Shown here: piece after piece, positions 1,211-64,000 of the stretch | Position numbering within the stretch: position 1 is the first letter of the stretch | Layout of the letters: every line of letters starts with the position of its first letter | NCBI RefSeq assembly: GCF_021869535.1 | Contig: NW_026262626.1 | Location: forward strand, 124,001 to 188,000 | Direction of reading: 5' to 3' | Source of the DNA: Mytilus californianus | Lineage: Eukaryota | DNA length: 64,000 nucleotides | Notes under the pieces: generated by a model | What the model was told of the DNA's origin: nothing | What the model saw: the letters and a program-made list of their open reading frames with translations, nothing else | Databases searched by the model: none | Program-made: the position numbers and the translations under genes

Positions 1211-1880
1211 AAAAAAGGAGATTTGGTATGATTGCCAATGAGACAAATATCCACCCAAGTTCAAATGAAGTGGATGTAAGGAATTATAGGCAAATGTACG
1301 GCCTTAAACAATGAGAAAAACCCATACCGTATAGTCGGCTATAAAAGGCCAGACATGAAAATATGAAACAATTCAATTGAGAAAATTAACGGCCTAATGT
1401 ATAACAAAACAATTTACGAAAAACAAATATGACAGACATGAACAAACGACAACCACTGACTTTCGACAGGCACATAAAGAATGTGGCGGGGTTAAACATG
1501 TTTGTGAGCGCTCAACCCACCCCTAACCTTAGACAGTGGTGTAAAAGCACAACATAAGAACAAACTATAAAAATCAGTTGAAAAAGGCTTAACTCATCAA
1601 ATCGATACAAAGCAGAAAAATATCAAACAAAAACACAGACCGGACTTGGCAGGGTATATATCCATCCCTCATCCCTAACAAAAAAAATACAGATCTGAGA
1701 GTACTCGCAGTTTCTAACAGCTTGTTCAAAGCTAATAACAACTAATAAAAAAAAATCATGTATCTTAGACTAAAATATCAATCAGTACACCTCCAACATC
1801 CAATGGATTTTTTTTTTACGTCATTAACAATCAGAGAAAAACATGACCTTGTGCAATGCCAAAATATATATATCGACAGA
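1211..1880 (-). mobile_element. 5'-truncated Naiad-type retroelement 3' UTR/tail with degenerate SECIS
   Basis: Reverse complement aligns by eye to the post-ORF region of the 40316-43487 element (ggcattgcacaag..tcatg..ATGAC..TGAT..ttagtct..gatgcatgatttttt..agtaactgcgagtactctca) and ends in the shared tail gtctcattggcaatcatacc. Confidence 0.7.
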
Positions 1881-2559
1881 TTGTAGTACCATGCAAGTGC
1901 ATATGTTTATAATAATAATATTAAAGTTAACATTTATGAACTGTAGCTTCGACAATCATACCAATCCTAATATATCAGTTCAAATCATTTTAATCACTTT
2001 CTCTATCTGTCTTGTTTTCATTTACAACTTGAAATTATGCAAATGCTTGTTCTTTATGTGCATCAATTCTTGTGAACAGTTATCAATTTTTTGAAATTGC
2101 CCATTACCGTAACGGTGTACAGCAATCAAATCCATTCATAAAAGAAACCTTCAACAATATAACAAACCTAAAGTGTTAAATTATAATGTGTCTAAATCTT
2201 ATTTAAATAATGCCTTTGAAGACACCCAAATGATAGCCAACTCCTCACGACGGATACGTGTATTGTTCATGAATTCTTTTTTTTTTTTTAATTTTTGTTC
2301 GCAAAAATGCCTGTGTCAGCGTTTTGTGAAATAAGACGTAAAACATTGAAATAATTATGCACAAATTAACATTTTTTTAGACATCTTACGCGCAGTCACA
2401 AATAAAAGGAAATAAATACCGCTTTGCTCACAGTGATCTGAGGTCTAGCGTTGCATATAATTCGCAAACGGAAACAGCAGACATAACCAAACGTCTCCCC
2501 GTGCTTCAGGTTTATGCTTTTATAATATACTAGATACTGGAGTGTGTGTCCGAGCGAGA

Positions 2560-4246
2560 ACACCTCTATGATAACCTGTTTCTGTATTGTTATGAGTTAC
2601 AATTTATGACTAAAATCAACAAAGACCTATCGAAACAACATCTGATACAAAAATTTGATAACACTTTTAGATATTTGGATGATATATTGGTTCTCAATAA
2701 TGACGACTTCAGTATGTACACTAAAGAGATTTATCCTGCTGAACTGACTTTAAATAAAGCTAATATTAACAATGAACACTGCCATTTCCTGGATCTTGAT
2801 ATCTATATCTTTAACGGGAAGCTTAATACCAAAATGTATGATACAAGAGATGATTTTTCATTTCCTATTGTTAGTTATCCATTTTTAGATGGTGACGTTC
2901 CCTTGTCACCATCTTATGGTGTTTATATATCTCAACTTGTTCGATTCGCTTGTGTATGTAACAACGTATTTGATTTTAACGAAAGAAACCTCTGTATTAC
3001 CTAAAAATTATTACACCAGGGTTTTCGTTATCACAAACTAGTCAAAACATTTACTAAATTTTATCATCGGTACAAGGACATGATTCGTAAATATAATATG
3101 TTGGTGGTTCATGTCTGTCATATTTGTTTTTCTTAAATTGTTTTGTTATATTTTCTGCAAATAGTTTTCTCTTTGAGTTGTTTCACATTATTCATGTCAA
3201 TGCCTTTTATAGTTGTCGTCTGTTAACTTTTACAAAAATCTTCTCCTCTGAAACTACTTGGCCACAATCATCAATATTGTTTCTAGTTTTAAAAAAATGT
3301 GTACGCTGACCCCGACTCTCAACGTAAATTTTATCATCGGTACAAGGACATCATTCGTAAATATAAATCAACATGCAGATATCTTATACGTTCAGGTATT
3401 TCACATCCAATCTTTTATGGTAATATTCTATACAAAGCACAGAAATGTCGACATTCACCTCAAAAGCTAACCAAACCGTTGAACAGACTTATTCAGAAGG
3501 GATATAGTTACGATACTGTTGTCAGGTCATTAAAGATGGCATATTTTGGTATTAATATTGATTCACTCATACGGTCTTTGCATCGGAAATAAACAAATTT
3601 ATTCTAAAACCAGTTGTTGGCATGATACGGGTTATGTTCGTCTCATATATTTTATGATGGTATGATACTAAAACCCTAACGGGAGGGATTGTGCTTGATT
3701 GTCATATGATGAAGACATAATCTTTCAATCAGTTTAATTGAGGTCTGGAGCTGGCATGTCAGTAACTGCTATATATATAGTGTAGTCCTTTGTTAATTTA
3801 CGTATCATTGTCATTTTGCTTAGTTTCTTTTGTTACCTATTCTGACATCGGACTCGGACTTCTTTTAAACTGAGTTTTACTGTGCGTATTGCTGTGTGTT
3901 TGTTTATTCTACATTGACTAGAGATATAGGGGGAGGGTTGAGATCTCACAAAACATGTTTAACCCCGTCGCAGTTTTGCTCCTGTCCCAAGTCAGGAGCC
4001 TCTGGCCTTTGTTAGTCTTGTATGTTTTTTAATTTTAATTCATTTATATGTTTTGGAGTTTAGTGTGACGTCCATTTTCATTGAACTAGTACACATATTT
4101 GTTTAGGGGCCAGCTGAAGCCCGCCTCTGGGTGCGGGATTTTCTCACTGTGTTGAAGACCCATTGGTGGTCTTCGGCTGTTTTTTACTCTTTGGTCGGGT
4201 TGTTGTCTCTTTGACAAGTTCCCTATTTTCATTCTCAAATTCTATT
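2560..4246 (+). mobile_element. 5'-truncated Naiad-type Penelope-like retroelement (RT C-terminal half, 3' UTR with SECIS); pseudogenised
   Basis: ORFs 2546-3004 and 3299-3592: DLFLYCYE-like, FRYLDDI, FLDLDI, PFLDGDVP..SYGVYISQL motifs of PLE RT. Nonsense TAA at 3002 and internal insertion 3097-3324. ORF ends at 3592 with no C-terminal GIY-YIG; about 650-bp 3' UTR follows. Probably lies in a PM20D2 intron. Confidence 0.85.
3643..3709 (+). promoter_or_regulatory. SECIS element candidate (type II) in Naiad 3' UTR
   Basis: ATGAT (3654-3658), 11 nt, AAA (3670), mini-stem CCC/GGG, 3' arm GATTGTGCT, TGAT (3696-3699); helix I TCATAT/ATATGA; helix II rich in G-U pairs. Confidence 0.7.
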
Positions 4247-4310
4247 ATTCAGTCTTTGTTGATAACTGTTTTTTTAAATTTAATTATCGAATATCGATAC
4301 ATATTTAAAG

Positions 4311-4881
4311 GGTTCATGTGGACCCTTTGGCTAAAATGGCTGAGTTTTCATCTCAAAATTTACCTTGAGTACAGACAAACCTGTGTATCTGGAAAAAGTT
4401 TTAAGACATAGCATACCCTAGATAAATAAAATTCAAATACATTTCATGTTTTAGAAAATAAGAAACTTAACTGGATTTTGCAGTGCACTTTTTTTCGTCC
4501 CTGCAGAAGATGATAAAATAAACAAACAGTTGAGTTTCACTTGATATGGTCCACTCAGTGACACAGTTAAAATCACCAATTGTTGTCAGGTATCTATTAT
4601 CCCTCTATTATCCATTTCAATCAATACAGTTCACTTCAATTATTACCTATGGGGAAGTTCTCAATTCTTTGTTTATTTTGACACCTTCTGAAGGAACGGA
4701 AAAAAGTGCACTCCAAAATCCAGTTAAGTTTAAATTTTCTAAAAAATAAAATGCATTTGAATTTTATTTATCTAGTGCATGCTAATCCTTGAAACTTTTC
4801 CAGATACACAGGTCTTTCTGTACTCAGAGTAAATTTTGAGGTGAAAAAGCAGCAAATTTAGCCATAGGGTCAACATGAACC
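4311..4881. mobile_element. Foldback-type MITE with about 200-bp terminal inverted repeats
   Basis: GGTTCATGTGGACCCTTTGGCTAAA... (4311 to about 4510) is the diverged reverse complement of ...TTTAGCCATAGGGTCAACATGAACC (about 4687-4881). Confidence 0.75.
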
Positions 4882-10347: not shown

Positions 10348-13300
10348 CTATTCTTTCTTGTTGCTTCCCAACTTTGAAAGGGCGTCCTCCAAAAGTGATA
10401 AATCACCTGTGGAAAGAAAAATGCAATGATATACTGAATATTAAATGAATTATACCTAGTATTGTCTTTAAAGGATAAGCATATAACATGTTTAAGAAGG
10501 TGGGTGAGTCGAAAAATGCAATGCTAACACCATGGCAAAAAGACGAAATGACAAAAACAGAACGTCCAAAAAATCATACATTGAATACTAAAGATTAAAC
10601 AATATAAACACCAAGAAAACAGGAAGGGGTGTTAAAATTTCTTCCATATGCTTGAAGCGATTTTGAATTCTTCTTTTGAGAACCCTGTAGTTCATACACA
10701 TTTTGTACAGGTTCAATTTCATAAAGTGCAAAAAGACCGACATTCCTAATTGTAAGTCCAACTAAAGTTATAAAGTTTGCGCTTTGTTAGTGTACGTCAA
10801 ATGGTTATATGATCTTATATCTAAAATGAATTGGGTTGCACAATTCTTTTAGGAATATTCTTATAAAACCAGTTGTCAATTTTCTTTTTACAATTATAAT
10901 TGTGTATCAAATTACCTTTGATTGTCTTTGTAAGATTGATTATCTGATCTTTACTGTCAATAACCTCAACGCAAAGTGTGTAAGGGTTGTATCTGACACT
11001 GAACGGTCTTGGTATGGTCGATGCAAATGCCCTGAAAGACAGAAATCATAAACATGAACGATGTAACGGATAGATAAAACATTATCCGTTTGTTGAGTGC
11101 ATACTTTGAAAAGTCTCAAGGAAGGGAATACGTTTAGACATTCCGATGAAGCTCCTAAGTATTACTCATTTTCAAATAACAAGAGTACTGTAGCGATTTT
11201 AAAGACACCCTTTTGAACAAACAACTATGATAAATGCAAAATAAAAACTGAACCTTATCGAATACTATAGTTCCTTTTTCACTTTTGCTTGATCCGCCAC
11301 TTAAGTAAGCTGTATTCGAAAATAGTTTATAAGTAGTTTTTTCCTTTTGATATCTATGGTGAATTCTACTTACAGATGATCATTGTATTTAAGACAACGT
11401 TTCATACAGAATATAGTATATGGTAGAGAGTTTTTTGAAATAAGAGTCCAAAATTGTTCCTTGACAACAACTTTGTATTCATTTCACCTTTCCCTTTTTC
11501 ATTTTAATTAGAGTTTTGACATTTTTAAACATGCTATGATACGATACATTGATAGATACATATTGACTTCGATGACGTTATTTATCATGTTACCTCATTT
11601 TCTCCTTTGCCGAATCAAAGCTATCAGCTACATAATAGATTGGTTGGAACTCTGTGATAGGATACTGTTGTTCAGCTGTCTTTGCTGGATCAAATGGTCT
11701 TGTTTCAGGCTTGTCACTTACACAGTACTAAAATAAGACCATAATCTAATGTAAAAAGCTACAATTTCGAAAGTACAAGAAACAGCAGCTCTTACTAATC
11801 TAGATAATCATGACGTCTGCTGGTATTTTTCGATTCTAGTTTGTATATATCCTCACAGAAACACTATGTTTAAAGTACCCCGACAAAAAATGTTTAGTCT
11901 CGGTAGTATATGATATTCAGTACGGTGACGGAGTATCTACAGACAGAGAAATGGTCGGATATATGTTTATTTATTTGTGTTTTTGTATAAAATTGAAGGA
12001 AATAAATACACATATGACTATTTTCGATTGTGAGATGTAATATTTTCTACAACTGGCCTAGACTAATGGAGAAATAAATAAAAATGCGAGTCCAAATGAT
12101 GACTAGAGTGAACCTTACCTCGAATTTGTTTACTTTCTCATTAAATTGTGCACAATGTGAGGAAAGAAAGATATATACGTCTGGCGTATTAAATTATAAT
12201 CCTGGTACCTATTTACACCACTGGGTCGATGCCACTGCTGGTGGACGTTTCGTCCCCGAGGGTATCACTAGCCCAGTAGTCAGCACTTCGGTGTTGACAT
12301 GAATATTAATTATATGGCCATTTTTATAAATTTCCTGTAACAAAACTTTGAATTTTTCGAAAAACTAAGGATTTTCTTATCCCAGGAAGAGATTACATAG
12401 CCGTATTTGGGTCATCTTTTTGGAATTTTGGGTCCTCAATGCTCTTCAACTTTGTACTTGTTTTGGCTTTATAACTATTTTGATCTGAGAGTCACTGACG
12501 AGTCTTATGTAGACGAAACGCGCGTCTGGCGTATTAAATTATAATCCTGGTACCTTTGATAACTATATACATGGTATTATTCCAATATAAATAAGAGAGT
12601 GCTAACAATGCAATTTTTCATATAATAAATATTTCCAAGGGGCATAACTCTTTTAAGAATAATTGATCGGCACTGATTTTCGAACTCATTCGAGACATTG
12701 CTGATATAAACATATGATACAAGTTTCATAAAATTCTGACAAGAATTGTACTCGTGAGAGCACTAACAATGCAATTTTCATATAATAAATATTTCCGAGG
12801 GGCATAACTCCTTTTTTTTATTAAATTGAGCGTTGCGGGTTGAAAAGGGGGGGGGGGGGACAACAATAGACTCCAAAGATGTCATAGGTATTAAATGTTG
12901 TTCAGGAGCCAACACTTCTTATTATGTCTTTTACGATCAAGTTCACGTCAAGGCACATGAAAAGATAGCATACCAATGTTAAATTAGATTCAATATAAAT
13001 TTAAGGACAAATTAACGTGAGAGAAAATCAATCATTGACATTCCTTGAACTCTCAAAAATGTTAAACTATCTATAGAGCAAACATTTAATACTATGCAAA
13101 AAAGATATAAGCAGTAGGAAATATCACGAATAGGAACCCGACAGGATTGTTCAATGGTAATTTTGAAAGCTTATACTAATTAGTCCAATTTTATGTGAAT
13201 TTGATCTCTGTTACTCATTTAAACAAGAATGTGTCCATAGTACACGGATGCCCCACTCGCACTATCATTTTCTATGCTCAGTGGACCGTGAAATTGGGGT

Positions 13301-32182: not shown

Positions 32183-32934
32183 AAAATGTTATACCCAGTA
32201 GGAAATAAATAATTCATCTACATGTGCTGTTGGAATGTTATAAGGACTTCACATGTTTTTGGAATAACCATTTGGGGCCAAAAGTTAAGAAATACAAGTA
32301 TAAATATACTAGTAGTTGGGAATATCAAAATCAAAAGGGCCTTCTATCTGAACTAATTTTAAGAAAAAAGGAAATTCAAAAGCCATTGCCTTAATCTTTC
32401 ACTTTTAGCTTTTGGAAAAAAAACTTATACTGTAGCTGGTAAATTGAATAAACACTATACCAGAAAATACTAGTAGAGGACATAACGTAAACATGCACGT
32501 ATTGGGCGATGGGACATATAGTTTAAATTGAGTTATCTCCCGTTTCCCAGAAACGATTTTAAAAGATATGCTTCTTCCCCCATATCATTACAAAATGCAT
32601 TATAAGTACAAGTGATAGGTCCAATGCTTAAGTAAAGTATAACTGATGACACTTCAATGGGCGTCTCTAATATTATAGAATTACAAGCAATAAACGTGAT
32701 AAAACATTATGGATAACTCATATTTCACTCATTCTGAATCTCGATTTTGTGAGTTAGTGTTTTCCAGGAGTTAGAACTCACACATATAATGAAAAAAGAA
32801 ATTCGTTCTTCCCAAGTTACATATGTATATGGTTATCCTACTAAATATAAAGCTTCAATACGACTGTTCGGTTAACTCTTGATAATTCCATGTATAAAAC
32901 AAACAAACATAAATTGTTATGTTATGAATTAGGC

Positions 32935-33120
32935 CGTAGGCTTTTCGTTTGAATTGTTTCACATTTTTTATGCCGGGCCCTTTTATAGCCGACTATACGG
33001 TATGGGTTTTTTTCATTGTTAAAGACCATATGCTGGTCTATAATTGCTTACTACCATTTCATTTTAACTCTGCGGTGGATAGTTGTCTCATTGGCAATCA
33101 TACCATATCTTCTCTTATAA
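32935..33120 (+). mobile_element. Short Naiad 3' tail copy
   Basis: ccttttatagccgactatacggtatggg...gttgtctcattggcaatcataccatatcttct, the reverse complement of 1211-1350. Confidence 0.65.
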
Positions 33121-34141: not shown

Positions 34142-35302
34142 AAATATAATTTACAAACGGTATTTTTGTAGATTTGCTGTTTCATTAACGTTTATCCCAT
34201 ATGTTTGTCAATGGTATTCCCGTCAATTGTAATTTTTATACCCCGTTAAGAAACGTGTTGACCCCTGTCTATCCTTTAGCTGTCCATACAGTTGTCCGTA
34301 AGTCCGTCCGTCAGTTCGTCTCTCCTGTGAAATTTTCGTAGTATTTTTCTCAGGAACTACAAAATTTTAATCAAGAGTTAACTGAATACTTAAATTTATG
34401 CAACAGTAAATTACCGCTGTTCGAATCTCATAAATCGATTAAGAAGACAAATCAAGGTAACAAACAAAAACTGAAGAACACACAATAACTACGAAGGAGC
34501 TATGCATGCATCAACTACCATTCGAATCCACCCAAGAGCACATGTGTTCATCCCTCATGTTCGGGTTTCAATGCTTTATTTTGTGCCTTTGGTATTTAAT
34601 GTATTTGCTGTTTCTTTTCTATCCCTTGCACTGAAGACCATTTTGAACTGTCAAAAGTGCCAGGTTAATGGAGTAGAAAATTATGTGTATCAATCGTTTA
34701 TGATTTTTTTTTTAATGTTTTATGGTTAGACATGAATTTTTTTTTATGTCTTATGGTTAGACAAGACGCATTCACCAATCCGTTATTGTATGATGCTAAA
34801 TTACTAATATGACTTTTTATACAATAGTAATCAATACCTATACATTGTACAGATTATCAACTGTAAACTAATTCTAACAAATGCATGACATATTTAGTAC
34901 TGGTTATATCATTATATCATATATATATAAAACTCCAATCAAAAGGTTTTAAGTAATTGACGGTATGAAATCCTTGACTTTTATACTTTACTAGGTATAA
35001 ATCGCTTACGTTCTTAAAAATCAAGGATATCATTGCAGACACAGTCTTGGCGAGCGAGTTGAAAAACATAAAGACCGAATGAAGGCATGAAGAAACATCA
35101 CTGTCCATAAAAAGAAAATTAGCAAAATGAAATTTTTGTCGTAAAATTTGATTATTTCTCTTACTCATTCCTAGTTCTCTTATCATTTGTATTACTCTAA
35201 TTTTCTTTAATCCTTTCCTTCTTCCACAGACTCTGAGTAACGGTGAAAATTTAAATATTGAAACATAATCATTGCTTCTCATTTACAGAATTGAAGAAAC
35301 AA

Positions 35303-40127: not shown

Positions 40128-40235
40128 TGATCAGGTTCACAAAAAATCTTAATACAAAAGTTGATCGTAAGTCATGAACAATTCAGTATACTTACTATCA
40201 ACTTTAGTCGTAAGATTTTTTTGTGAAACTGATCA
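40128..40235. mobile_element. 108-bp PIF/Harbinger-like MITE
   Basis: TIR TGATCAGGTTCACAAAAAATCTTA / TAAGATTTTTTTGTGAAACTGATCA. Confidence 0.65.
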
Positions 40236-40315: not shown

Positions 40316-43300
40316 TTTAATTATACGTCAGTTACATCAGACGTCAATATAGAAAATAATGTTCCTTCCACTTGAGACTGTGAAACATCTAGTTTTAGAT
40401 ATGTTCCCTATGGTCATGTTATTACAGGAGACCTCAACATCATCGAAGACCGTGATGTCAAAACTTTTCTAAAGAAAGGACCGAAATACCGTCCTCCATC
40501 TATAATAGATTGGAAACAGTGTCGTCAGGTCATTAAAGACGCTCTGTCTGCCTACTGTAAAAATTGGTGCAAACGTGAAAAATCTGATAAAAAATCTCTA
40601 GACTGTTATTTGAATAAAATTATGAATACTGTTAATATTCGAATATCTCATTTTGAAAACAATTCTGAAATTAATAATAGGGTCCATGATATTCCCATTT
40701 CTAGAATAAAAAATAAACTCCAAGTACTCGCAGAGCGGTTTGTGTTCGTACCGGCAGACAAGGCAGCCAATAATGTAGTGGTGGTATGACGCATATACTA
40801 CACGGAAGTTCTTCAAAACGAAATTATCAATTCCTCTACATTCAGGTCCGTACGCACCACTGAGTGTCAAATCGTTAACAAGCATATCACTGCCACTACC
40901 CAGCTTAAAGCCTCTTCCGAACATTTGAAAGTCCCTACCATGTACTGGTTACCGAAATTACACAAAAAACTATTTAAATTCCGTTTCATCTCCGCATCTA
41001 GTAAGTGTTCTACTACTCATATATCAGTGCTTCTTACTACCTCCCTTACTACTATCAAAGAACTGGTTATTAACTTTTGTAATAAAGCTTATGAAAATAA
41101 TGGTATTAATTATTTTTGGGGTGTTAAAAATTCTTTAGAGGTTTTAGATAAAATACATTCTTTTGATGGTCCTTTTGGTTCTGTTGACAGTAATGATTTT
41201 TCTACTCTCTACACTACACTTCCACACAATCTAATAAAGAAAAAATTTCATATTTAATAAAATGGTCTTTCGAAAAATCTCATTGTAAATTTATTTGCTG
41301 TAACTCGTTTAAAGCCTTTTTCTGTGACGAAAAAGGAAAGTATGCTAGATACACTTACTGGAAATGTGAGGATATGATTGAAGCTTTAAATTTTCTCCTA
41401 GATAACATATATGTTCGTTTCGGCGATAAAGTGTATCGTCAGGTAGAAGTTTTCCTATGGGCACTAACTGCGCCCCTTTAATTGCAGATTTATTCCTGTA
41501 TTGCTATGAATCTCAGTTTATGACCAAACTCAGTAGAGACACATCATTGTTACATTTGGTTGATACATTCAACAATACCTACCGTTATCTGGATGATATT
41601 TTTTCGTTAAATAATCCAGAGTTCTCTAAATATACTACCGAAATTTACCCAAAAGAACTTACTTTAACTAAATCTAACATAAACAGCAGCAGTTGTCCTT
41701 TTCTAGATTTAGACATTTCAATTTCTAAAGGGAAACTCCATACTAAAATTTACGACAAAAGAGACGATTTTTCATTACCTATTGTTAATTTTCCTTTTTT
41801 AGACGGCGATGTGCCTTTGGCTCCATCATACGATGTTTATATATCCCAACTCGTTCGGTATGCCCGTGTGTGTAGTGATGTCATAGATTTTAACGAACGT
41901 AATCAATGCATCACTGGTAAATTATTGAGTCAGGGATTTCGTTACCATAAATTACTTAAAACTTTTACTAAATTCTTTCATAGATACAAAGATTTGATTA
42001 GTAAATTTGGCTGTTCCTGTAGAAAACTTATTAAAAATGGTATTTCACATCCTACATTTTATGGTAATATTGTACTTAATGCGCGGAAATCATTATGTGA
42101 TCCGTGTAAACTCATCGAACCTTTAAACAAACTTATTAGTAAGGGTTATCGTACCAATGTTGTAATTAGATCTCTGAATATAGTTTACATTGGCACTAAT
42201 ATCGATTTTGTCATTAGCAAATTAAAACATAACTAAATTTGTGTTTTCTTTTCAAACGGGATGTATAGAGACACACACACGTTCATTTTTATCTATAAAG
42301 AAGTCACTCCTAACTATCCTACTACCTGTCGATACATTTATTTTTGGCATTGCACAAGTCATGTCTTCTTTGACTGTTCATGACGTTAAAATACTAAATC
42401 CCTGGGATGTATTTTAGTTGATTTTAGTCTCTGATGCATGATTTTTTATTATTAATTGTTTTGGCTTTTAACTAGCTGTCAGTAACTGCGAGTACTCTCA
42501 AATCGTACTTTCTTTTAAATTTGACCTGTTGATACTATTTGTAATGCTTTATTATTATTTTATGTTAACATGGATCTTGTCTATATACCAGCTTTGATTA
42601 TTTGGTATTTAATTTACTACAAATTTTCACTTCTTCGTACTATGAACATCAAAATTATTTCATTTTTCATTAGATGCTGTTCTTGGACATGTACATGAAG
42701 TTTTATCTAGCACTAATTGTATATTTTTATTGTTGATATTCACCCCATATGTACCAAGTGTTAGATTAGTTTTATTGATATTAAAGAAATTTCTTGGAAT
42801 TCCTAAACGGAAGATTTTATACACACAGAAGAAGAAGCATACCTAACAACAAAATTATTTTCATTAACCTGTGTATAATATGACGCAGGTTTCTTCAAAA
42901 GTGATGATTTTCTAAAAATTGTTTGAAATTTCAAAGTGATATCATACTTTAACTTTGTTTAAACCTGTTTATTTACTTTTAACTTTAATTATTTATCCCT
43001 TGTAATTTTTTATTAACTGTGTATTTGCATTCAGGTGTCACAGGTCAAATTTATTCGTTCATTGTGTGTTAATTTACGTTTTTTGATTGAGTTAAGCCTT
43101 CCAATTGATATTTTATAGTGCGTTTTTTCTATGTTGTGATGTTATACTATTGTTTCAGAAAAGGGAGAAGGTTTGGTACCAATCAAACGTTTAATCCCGC
43201 TGCAAATATTTGCACCTGTCCTGTCAGGAATCTGATTACAGTAGTTGTCGTCTGTTTATGTAGTTCATACGTGTTTCTCGTTTTTATATAGATTTGACCG

Positions 43301-43487
43301 TTGGTTTTTCCGTTTGAATGGTTTTACACTAGTAATTTTTTGGGGCCCTTTATAGCTTGCTGTTCGGTGTGAGCCAATGCTCCGTGTTGAAGGCCGTACC
43401 TTGACCTATAATGGTTTACTTTTATAAATTGTAACTTGGATGGAGAGTTGTCTCATTGGCACTCATGCCACATCTTCCTATATCTAT
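40316..43487 (+). mobile_element. 5'-truncated Naiad (N-terminal-endonuclease-class Penelope-like) retroelement with UGA-containing RT ORF
   Basis: Frame from 40316: FNYTSVTSD..PST*DC..PYGHVITGDL..KGPKYR..PADKAANNVVVV*RIYY..YWLPKLHK..DFSTLYTTLPH; 1-nt frameshifts at about 41246 and 41450; PMGTNCAP..FRYLDDI..; stop TAA at 42236 without C-terminal GIY-YIG; 1.25-kb 3' UTR. Confidence 0.9.
42372..42430 (+). promoter_or_regulatory. SECIS element (type II)
   Basis: ATGAC (42380-84) + GTTAAAATAC/GTATTTTAGT 10-bp helix II + AA at 42396 (11 nt after core) + ATCC/GGAT mini-stem + TGAT (42419-22); helix I GACT/AGTC; about 140 nt after the ORF stop. Confidence 0.88.
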
Positions 43488-44178
43488 TCACAAAGTGGTC
43501 TTAATTTACGACATCTCTTAAAGTTGGTCTTAAAGTTAGGACTACACGAGAGCTGTCTTAGGATAGTCTTAGGATAGTCATAAGTTAAGACATCGTTATG
43601 ATGTCCTAACATGAGTTGTAAACAAATATGGCTGCTGTAGATTTAATGCACATCAGACGATGACAACAAAATGTACGCATAAATAGCTCTGATTCGGTGA
43701 AAATGGGACTCCTTTTCCTGCTCATAACTAAATCTTTATAGGTTGACGGATTATCAAAATGATTTGTCAACAATGACTTTCGATGTATTTATAGCAGAAT
43801 GCACGACTTTATCCTTTAACTTTAGTATAACCGATCATACAGTGACACATTGAATTCTACTCACTTGTACAAAAAAAATGGTCATCATTTTATTCTTTAT
43901 TTTCCCTCCATTTCGTATTTGAATTTTCATATGTATATTGGTGTATTATTAATAGATTATTTATATAAATAACACTTATTTTTATATCAATTTTGCAAAA
44001 TATCTAATTATGGAATATTGTTCAATACGTTTAGTAATCTATATATCTTATGACAGGTCTTAGGATAGCTTTGTTAAACCGGTCCCAGGGACCGTGTCAT
44101 CGAAAGTGTACTAAGATTTGTCTTAAGATATATCTTAGGACAAATATTATAGGACAGTCTTAGGAAAATTTATAATTG

Positions 44179-52476: not shown

Positions 52477-52638
52477 TATATAAAGAATAATCATACATTG
52501 TCTCGAAATATAAATTTTATTTGTACTCGGCTCAAAAAAGAATAGAAGAGCTCGGCAAAGCCTCGCTTTCTACCTGTTTCTAAGCCTTGTACAAATAAAA
52601 TGTATATTTCGAGACAATGTATGGTTATTCTATATATA
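52477..52638. mobile_element. Short hairpin MITE with 42-50-bp near-perfect TIR
   Basis: GAATAATCATACATTGTCTCGAAATATAAATTTTATTTGTAC / GTACAAATAAAATGTATATTTCGAGACAATGTATGGTTATTC, 2 mismatches. Confidence 0.8.
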
Positions 52639-63779: not shown

Positions 63780-64000
63780 GACAACAGTACTTCAACGCAT
63801 GTTCTCTGTAGATGTTCAGTGGCTGTCGTTTGTTGATGTGGTTCATAAGTGTTTCTCGTTTCTCGTTTTTTATACAGGTTAGACCGTTGGTTTTCCTGTT
63901 TGCATGGTTTTACACTAGTCATTTTTGGGGCCCTTTATAGCTTGCTTGTCGGTGTGAGCCAATGCTCCGTGTTGAAAGCCGTACTTTGACTTATAACGGT
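63780..64000 (+). mobile_element. 3' tail of the 40316-43487 Naiad family, cut by the window end
   Basis: gtgtttctcgttt..gaccgttggttttc..ggggccctttatagcttgct..gagccaatgctccgtgttgaa matches 43270-43410. Confidence 0.85.

Follow-up and report, generated by a model that had tools for sequence, protein, structure and literature searches.

Whether in-frame TGA codons in a retroelement record the decay of a dead copy or the coding of a selenoprotein is the question raised by a locus of Mytilus californianus, contained in a stretch of 64,000 nucleotides (contig NW_026262626.1, positions 124,001 to 188,000; hereafter the window, whose own numbering is used below). There, a copy of a Naiad, i.e., a Penelope-like element (PLE) with an N-terminal GIY-YIG endonuclease, occupies positions 40316-43488 of the forward strand, and its open reading frame (ORF) is broken by TGA at two sites. 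Our results show that the copy is dead and belongs to a young Naiad family of high copy number, and make it very probable that the family codes for a selenoprotein with five UGA codons, dependent on a selenocysteine insertion sequence (SECIS) element. The original prediction, made from the letters of the window alone, proposed that the host carries a Naiad family recoded for selenocysteine (Sec); the fixation of the TGAs, the cysteine (Cys) columns of related proteins and the covariation of the SECIS element all agree with it.

In the mechanism that we propose, the family would encode a single ORF of ~1000 codons, comprising the GIY-YIG endonuclease, a CxC linker and the reverse transcriptase (RT), with five UGAs, each at a Cys that is invariant in Cys-type Naiads. 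Ordinary eukaryotic recoding, with SBP2, eEFSec and the tRNA for selenocysteine (tRNA-Sec) acting on the element mRNA, would insert Sec at all five UGAs, and the product would be a multi-Sec endonuclease-RT protein driving retrotransposition. The copy in the window would have died through 5' truncation at insertion and two 1-nt deletions.

The window copy and its family

The limits of the window copy were set by blastn against 30 genome copies and three full-length ones. The copy spans the CxC linker, the RT and a 3' tail of ~1.25 kb. Sequence upstream of 40316 is unrelated, and other copies extend up to ~1450 bp further 5'; at the opposite end, homology among copies reaches 43487/43488, so that the end originally placed at 42430 has to be moved downstream. 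When two 1-nt deletions are allowed for, the ORF (40316-42236) comprises ~641 codons, close to the ~640 first estimated, and its only in-frame stops are, as had been proposed, two TGAs. The first of these, U4 (40373-40375, context NNVPST[TGA]DCETSS), takes the place of the first Cys of the CxC motif, which in this copy reads U-D-C (40373-40381). The second, U5 (40787-40789, context PADKAANNVVVV[TGA]RIYYTE), takes the place of the Cys located eight residues past the DKA motif (DKA+8), this motif being DKA and not DKG in PADKAANNVVVV (40751-40786). The frame is composed of three segments, namely 40316-41250, interrupted by the two TGAs only, 41251-41451, with 67 open codons, and 41445-42233, with 263 open codons, and it closes with a TAA (42234-42236) that 27 of the 30 copies share. 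Both frameshifts are true 1-nt losses of the window copy, one after 41250 (41250-41251) and the other within 41446-41451: RNA contigs derived from other copies carry an extra G at the first point (two runs) and one extra base at the second, and the flanking frames are open at each. The view that this copy is itself frameshifted and 5'-truncated was therefore correct.

We searched the M. californianus genome (1.65 Gb, 175 contigs) with a 2.2-kb query, obtaining 7,513 first-look candidates and 43 scored matches at 94-100% identity. The 5' ends differ among copies, with many separate end points, as is usual for elements truncated 5' during target-primed reverse transcription. The search for intact full-length elements suggested at the outset was successful with regard to length, since three copies are complete (~4.65 kb), but not to integrity, all three being frameshifted. 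The full-length copies, together with a public contig of the same family (L035), include ...LIYVVT[U]TQPKCGIQYVGQT..., the GIY-YIG part N-terminal to the RT that the window copy lacks owing to its 5' truncation, and align over their whole length with homologues of ~900-1100 amino acids displaying the same domain order. Pfam searches with the ORF pieces gave a sub-threshold TEX10 match only, and no GIY-YIG or RVT match, which we attribute to the splitting of the domains by the TGAs. In another copy (L019), the 482 codons between the second TGA and the terminal TAA are free of interruptions. Reads extending past the 3' end (43486-43488) are AT-rich and variable; the flank of the window copy itself is not (TA)n, and no tandem arrangement was seen.

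In-frame TGA codons within the family and among its relatives

Fixation of the TGAs was judged by per-site tallies, used in place of a family consensus. Among the fetched copies, U4 is TGA in 18 of 19 (CGA in one), and U5 is TGA in 22 of 25 (TGG in two, AGA in one). Genome-wide pattern counts, for which the reversed-pattern controls gave zero, located U4 at 285 places and U5 at 366; among the 100 listed for each, U4 is TGA in 99 and TGG in one, and U5 is TGA in all 100. According to the original prediction, TGT or TGC in most copies would have spoken for decay of this copy alone; both sites are instead TGA family-wide, and neither TGT nor TGC occurs at U4 or U5 among the fetched copies and listed genome matches. 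Most subfamily variants beside the TGAs are synonymous changes (GAC/GAT, GTA/GTG). In the full-length copies, the endonuclease region has another three TGAs in frame, with contexts CNAKK[TGA]LTC, SCDIT[TGA]KTQNLIY and IYVVT[TGA]TQPKCGIQYVGQT, all fixed in the 6-7 genome copies that reach them (6-7/6-7). The three N-terminal sites, defined from these 6-7 genome copies and public contigs, correspond to the second Cys of a CX4CxxC motif (U1), the Cys directly before GIY (U2) and the first Cys of a CCHH finger (U3).

The amino acid states of these columns in other Naiads were first obtained with HMMER: the segment of the window copy that separates its two TGAs, used as query against 1.84 billion representatives, retrieved 1,214 relatives. 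In the best 150 of these 1,214, the first position of CxC is Cys in 82 of the 97 informative representatives, and DKA+8 is Cys in 64, as anticipated by the proposal that both TGAs occupy sites where Cys is the normal residue. A further 25 predicted proteins in this set end exactly at DKA+8, which implies a stop codon at that site in many diverged families. Among Cys-type homologues, 13 of them full-length, Cys is present wherever one of the U1-U5 columns is covered, including 13/13 at the U4 column.

We then compared the DNA of eleven public contigs and of one all-Cys control (L045). In the eleven contigs the frames are open over ~800-1100 codons, and the only in-frame stops are TGAs at the same five columns. 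When states are written in the order U1 to U5, with U for Sec, C for Cys and a hyphen for columns outside the contig, L035 reads UUUUU; this contig belongs to the mussel family (94% identity, 1005 open codons), and the other ten show 46-66% amino acid identity. Both L036 and L037 are UUUUC, L038 is -UUUU, L039 and L041 are UUUCU, and L042 and L044 are CUUCU, the protein cluster of L044 including a Mercenaria protein; the shorter contigs read ---CU (L043) and ---UU (L040 and L034). In L035 there are exactly five in-frame stops, all of them TGA, and its out-of-frame stops comprise 106 TAA, 37 TAG and 42 TGA; with such a composition, five stops drawn at random would seldom be TGA throughout. Between families, the proportion of synonymous differences (pS) is ~0.75, i.e., saturated, the proportion of nonsynonymous differences (pN) is 0.14-0.38, and pN/pS over the whole ORF is 0.2-0.5. 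This combination of saturated pS and low pN indicates that selection has kept the TGAs themselves as well as the coding sequence that flanks each of them.

In a maximum-likelihood tree, the eleven Sec-type sequences fall in one clade (support 100/100) composed of a Mercenaria-like and a mussel-like branch. The UGAs at U2, U3 and U5 are common to both branches and U1 marks the mussel-like one, and each of U4 and U5 requires at least two changes on this tree of few sequences. These patterns are evidence of switching between Sec and Cys among Naiad lineages, as read from the predicted states.

The same codons have left traces in public annotation. Annotated proteins (P0133, P0112, P0117, P0275 and P0276) are Naiad fragments bounded by Sec codons; among them, a 1911-aa 'hypothetical protein' of Pinctada imbricata terminates exactly at DKA+8. 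Proteins from 'Candidatus Thiodiazotropha' metagenome-assembled genomes (MAGs) are pieces of Naiad RT, which points to host DNA in symbiont bins. In L034 (ENA ERZ25073293 contig, 2501-4837), the gene caller rendered two in-frame TGAs as W; a code with TGA for tryptophan was apparently picked for this eukaryotic contig, and thus Sec-type transposable elements can mislead the automatic choice of a genetic code.

The SECIS element, the host and the alternatives

A SECIS had been proposed about 140 nt past the TAA. The Rfam SECIS_1 model places the element at 42372-42429, in the 3' untranslated region (UTR) and 136 nt past the stop, with 32.9 bits (E-value 9e-5 in a 501-nt search space and 0.012 in the 64-kb window). 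It consists of AUGA (42380-42383), a 10-bp helix II (42385-42394 with 42409-42418), AAA (42396-42398), a mini-stem of 3-4 bp and UGAU, with the GA at 42420-42421. The minimum-energy fold displays helix I, an internal loop (AUGA, UGAU), helix II, the unpaired AAA and a small apical stem, and contains 8 of the 10 bp that helix II has in the SECIS_1 alignment. Folding energy, with z values of -2.2, -1.6 and -0.5 in the analysis as a whole, is weak evidence when taken alone, and we relied on covariance models and pair counts instead.

A second, diverged Naiad family is represented in the window by a C-terminal RT fragment at 2564-3592 (forward strand; tblastn, 55-70% amino acid identity), which ends in a TAA at 3590-3592 and gives a pN/pS of 0.26 in codon comparison; this second copy terminates beside (TA)5. 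Its SECIS (3644-3708, forward strand, 52 nt past the stop, SECIS_1 26.5 bits) lies in a UTR that aligns as homologous to that of the first family, with compensatory changes, the first family having an 87-nt insertion between stop and SECIS. SECIS_1 also matched seven of the public contigs, at 38.8 bits in L044, a value above the cut-off, and at 28.8 in L040, 28.4 in L035, 28.0 in L036, 26.0 in L042, and 25.0 in both L037 and L034. From nine SECIS_1-matched elements we built our own covariance model (R1), which scores the window SECIS, a member of its training set, at 64.7 bits. R1 found three elements outside the training set, each just past the stop, in L041 (29.4 bits), L039 (23.7 bits) and L043 (22.3 bits), and gave no further match on either strand of ~118 kb, nor any in the all-Cys control L045. 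Altogether, of the 13 Sec-type loci (the eleven contigs and the two window copies), 12 have a sense-strand SECIS_1 or R1 match directly past the stop.

In a MAFFT alignment of nine elements, helix II is 93% paired, and changes on both sides were found in 9 of its 10 pairs. Its covariation score was 0.617, against 0.258 ± 0.042 in shuffles, none of which reached it (0/500), and 0.15-0.28 in slid controls. Pair counts were similar in a 12-sequence alignment (helix II 90-93% paired overall), which was itself fitted to R1. The UGA of AUGA, two of the apical A's and the 3' GA are invariant, the first base of AUGA being variable (GUGA in L044). The register of helix I shifts among the elements, and pairing in its fixed columns is only ~51%. 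In 9-10 of 12 elements the mini-stem retains C-C/G-G, which agrees with the proposed assignment to type II and is the sole basis for that class. Within the family, SECIS variation amounts to neutral scatter plus two subfamily markers and is not informative on structure. A 43-nt SECIS core occurs 2,292 times in the genome (up to 3 mismatches; control, 0).

The host genome contains two matches to tRNA-Sec (79.6 and 77 bits, cut-off 47). A tandem array of a tRNA-like gene (G000:C154:27755505-27807263, ~728-bp period, 50 listed units) reached 42.8 bits on the same model, below the cut-off, and is probably another long-arm tRNA. The cluster at ≥90% identity to the RT piece includes 'uncharacterized proteins' of Mytilus edulis and M. 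californianus (RefSeq), and the element was present in DNA runs of two organisms as well as in 'mollusc metagenome' RNA runs. In two raw-read RNA libraries, ORF depth was ~1-50 from ~6% of each run, and the ORF read pairs mostly have the first mate on the minus strand, which in the usual stranded libraries denotes sense RNA. Reads cover the SECIS on both strands, with sense in excess in run X23. None of the RNA variants listed falls at either TGA, and two common ones fall in the SECIS, 42378 U>C in a loop and 42411 A>G, by which a U-A pair becomes U·G. At the 3' end of the element, the final ~250 nt (43250-43488) are 10-50x more abundant in RNA than the ORF, with both strands covered, consistent with very many extremely truncated copies inside other transcripts. 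In X23, positions 41526 and 42841 are linked through 7 filler bases in 19 RNA reads, which stem from a transcribed, internally deleted derivative without the RT C-terminus and the SECIS.

Several observations weigh against the reading of the family as a SECIS-dependent selenoprotein. Every genome copy that can be read at full length carries frameshifts. The window SECIS scores just below the Rfam gathering score (32.9 vs 35 bits) and, taken by itself, folds with an ordinary energy (z -1.6 to -2.2); R1 detected no SECIS in L038, a Sec-type contig, and the all-Cys control consists of one locus. The RNA reads could reflect read-through or passive transcription, the 3' tail being covered on both strands. 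Lastly, that one SECIS suffices for the decoding of all five UGAs is a prediction.

Among the alternatives, the one that survives best, although still improbable, is that the UGAs are read through without Sec, either by near-cognate insertion of Cys, Trp or Arg or by Cys insertion through the Sec machinery, and that the hairpin has another role in the element RNA. Sequence data do not identify the inserted residue, five UGAs are demanding for one SECIS, and gene callers gave W at some sites (P0110). Nevertheless, those W calls are TGA in the DNA, the hairpin possesses the full SECIS core (xUGA, AA(A) and GA quartet), spaced as expected, and is recognised by SECIS_1, L044 exceeding the cut-off, and the strict correspondence between Cys and UGA is a hallmark of Sec/Cys pairs. 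We consider it very improbable that the UGAs are true terminators in a non-autonomous family that makes short peptides only and is mobilised in trans by Cys-type Naiads; such families exist, and Naiads are very abundant in bivalves, but purifying selection acts downstream of every UGA across saturated synonymous divergence, which is not expected of untranslated sequence, and the stops occur at Cys columns only, alongside a conserved SECIS. Finally, decay of a dead element, whether in this copy or across the family, as the source of the TGAs, combined with a hairpin that matches by chance, is barely credible and was rejected: the window copy is clearly dead and its SECIS falls short of the Rfam cut-off, but the TGAs are fixed across hundreds of copies and shared at the same Cys columns by eleven contigs with otherwise open frames, Cys-to-stop requires a transversion to exactly TGA at each site, in-frame TAA and TAG are absent even though out-of-frame stops are TAA-rich, and the SECIS covaries and is consistently placed.

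Insertion of Sec at the five UGAs of the mussel Naiad family stands as the preferred reading, in which Sec would act at Cys residues that probably bind metal or serve in redox chemistry. A dependence of retrotransposition on selenium supply, by way of redox or metal control, is speculation.

Other repeats occur around the Naiad copy. Directly upstream of the insertion point lies a ~108-nt inverted repeat (40128-40235) with arms 81% identical, weak microRNA-precursor-like Rfam matches and the look of a hairpin of the miniature inverted-repeat transposable element (MITE) type; the two flanks of the copy share the short motifs cacaaag and gtcttagga, and the copy was probably inserted into another repeat. 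At least five other pieces of related Naiad families are present in the window; short Naiad-related fragments, with 66-88% identity to parts of the full-length element, were located at 1219-1886 (reverse strand), 32928-33112 (forward), 34942-35149 (reverse) and 63817-64000 (forward). A whole-window Rfam scan (E≤1) detected no hammerhead within 40316-43488; the only hammerhead match in the window, of type I, is at 12489-12532 (forward strand, 35.4 bits, cut-off 34) and probably belongs, as a pseudo-long terminal repeat ribozyme, to a canonical PLE of the Penelope/Poseidon type located close to the Naiad copies. A long hairpin at 52484-52633 (forward strand) matched MIR8007 with 38.6 bits against a cut-off of 195, and is probably another MITE-like inverted repeat.

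Significance and comparison with known systems

Beyond this locus, we tentatively propose that one bivalve clade of active retrotransposons has undergone repeated, two-way exchange of Cys and Sec at five probable metal-ligand Cys residues, and that some of the more than 2,000 scattered SECIS-bearing 3' fragments may be, or may become, co-opted, providing the host with new selenoproteins or causing its transcripts to be read through at UGA; we regard this broader proposal as possible, though rather doubtful. If true, the clade would constitute a natural experiment on why Sec replaces Cys. The mosaic of predicted Sec and Cys states offers natural variant pairs for asking about the role of selenium in a GIY-YIG/RT enzyme. 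The selenoprotein-coding transposons known so far amount to four families, two in clams and two in spiders, and the trait would now appear widespread and still evolving in bivalves. There are also practical consequences: ORF-based annotation of transposable elements and genes in bivalves cuts Sec Naiads at UGA, the 'uncharacterized proteins' of Mytilus and Pinctada and the symbiont MAG proteins being such fragments, and SECIS-based prediction of selenoproteins in mussel genomes will face thousands of SECIS elements borne by transposable elements.

Naiads were named by Craig, Yushenova, Rodriguez and Arkhipova (2021; PMC8557442), who described the four Sec-coding families, with three or four UGAs each. 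The Sec sites published there are the Cys before GIY-YIG, DKA+8, the first Cys of CCHH (clams), a Cys of CX2-5CxxC (spiders) and one RT6(D) position, and the SECIS elements are located 1-21 nt past the stop or overlap it (PMC8557442). Mussel Naiads are mentioned in that work, not as selenoproteins, and a UGA at CxC is not in its list of sites (PMC8557442); the original prediction was right as to Sec-coding Naiads in clams and spiders, and the published sites cover DKA+8 and not the CxC site. Our literature searches found no later paper on Sec-coding Naiads.

The closest known systems are the clam families Naiad_Mmer (Mercenaria mercenaria) and Naiad_Scon (Sinonovacula constricta), which we compared by their published site descriptions, with the Mercenaria-like L044 as a sequence proxy. 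They share with the mussel family the N-terminal GIY-YIG, CxC, DKA and RT, the UGAs at U2, U3 and U5, and a SECIS past the stop. U2 and U3 were equated with the published motif names by reading of the motifs, an equation supported by L044, which has exactly the published three-UGA pattern and groups with the mussel family in a clade with 100% support. The mussel family differs in having five UGAs, where the clam families have three or four, the additional ones falling in CX4CxxC (second Cys) and in CxC (first Cys), and in its SECIS, located 136 nt past the stop and with a conserved mini-stem, whereas those of the clams are of type I at 1-21 nt. This distance is due in part to the 87-nt insertion relative to the second family of the window.

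With the spider families Naiad_Sdum and Naiad_Smim, the mussel family has in common the UGAs at Cys of the CX2-5CxxC finger (first and second in Naiad_Sdum), before GIY-YIG and at DKA+8; by their description, the spider families are without a UGA at CCHH or CxC. An independent origin has been inferred for the spider Sec Naiads (PMC8557442). Cys-type Naiads, such as Penelope-2_CGi of oysters, P0317 and P0148, show the same domain order and motifs, but have Cys at all five columns and no in-frame UGA, and no SECIS was found in the single control locus, L045.

Outside retroelements, selenoprotein P is a multi-Sec host protein with a very high Sec content in bivalves (Baclaocos et al. 2019, as cited in PMC8557442). 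As predicted for the mussel Naiad, it involves processive decoding of more than one UGA along a single mRNA, and it occurs in the same group of hosts; the two proteins are unrelated. Selenoprotein P typically has two SECIS elements, and its Sec residues are clustered C-terminally. The mussel Naiad, by comparison, has a single SECIS for UGAs spread over ~2.2 kb of its ORF. Set against all these systems, DKA+8 is an already published Sec site, and what appears to be new, judging from the predicted codons, is the mussel host, the set of five Sec codons, the putative Sec at CxC, which was not previously listed, and the switching between Sec and Cys among Naiad lineages.

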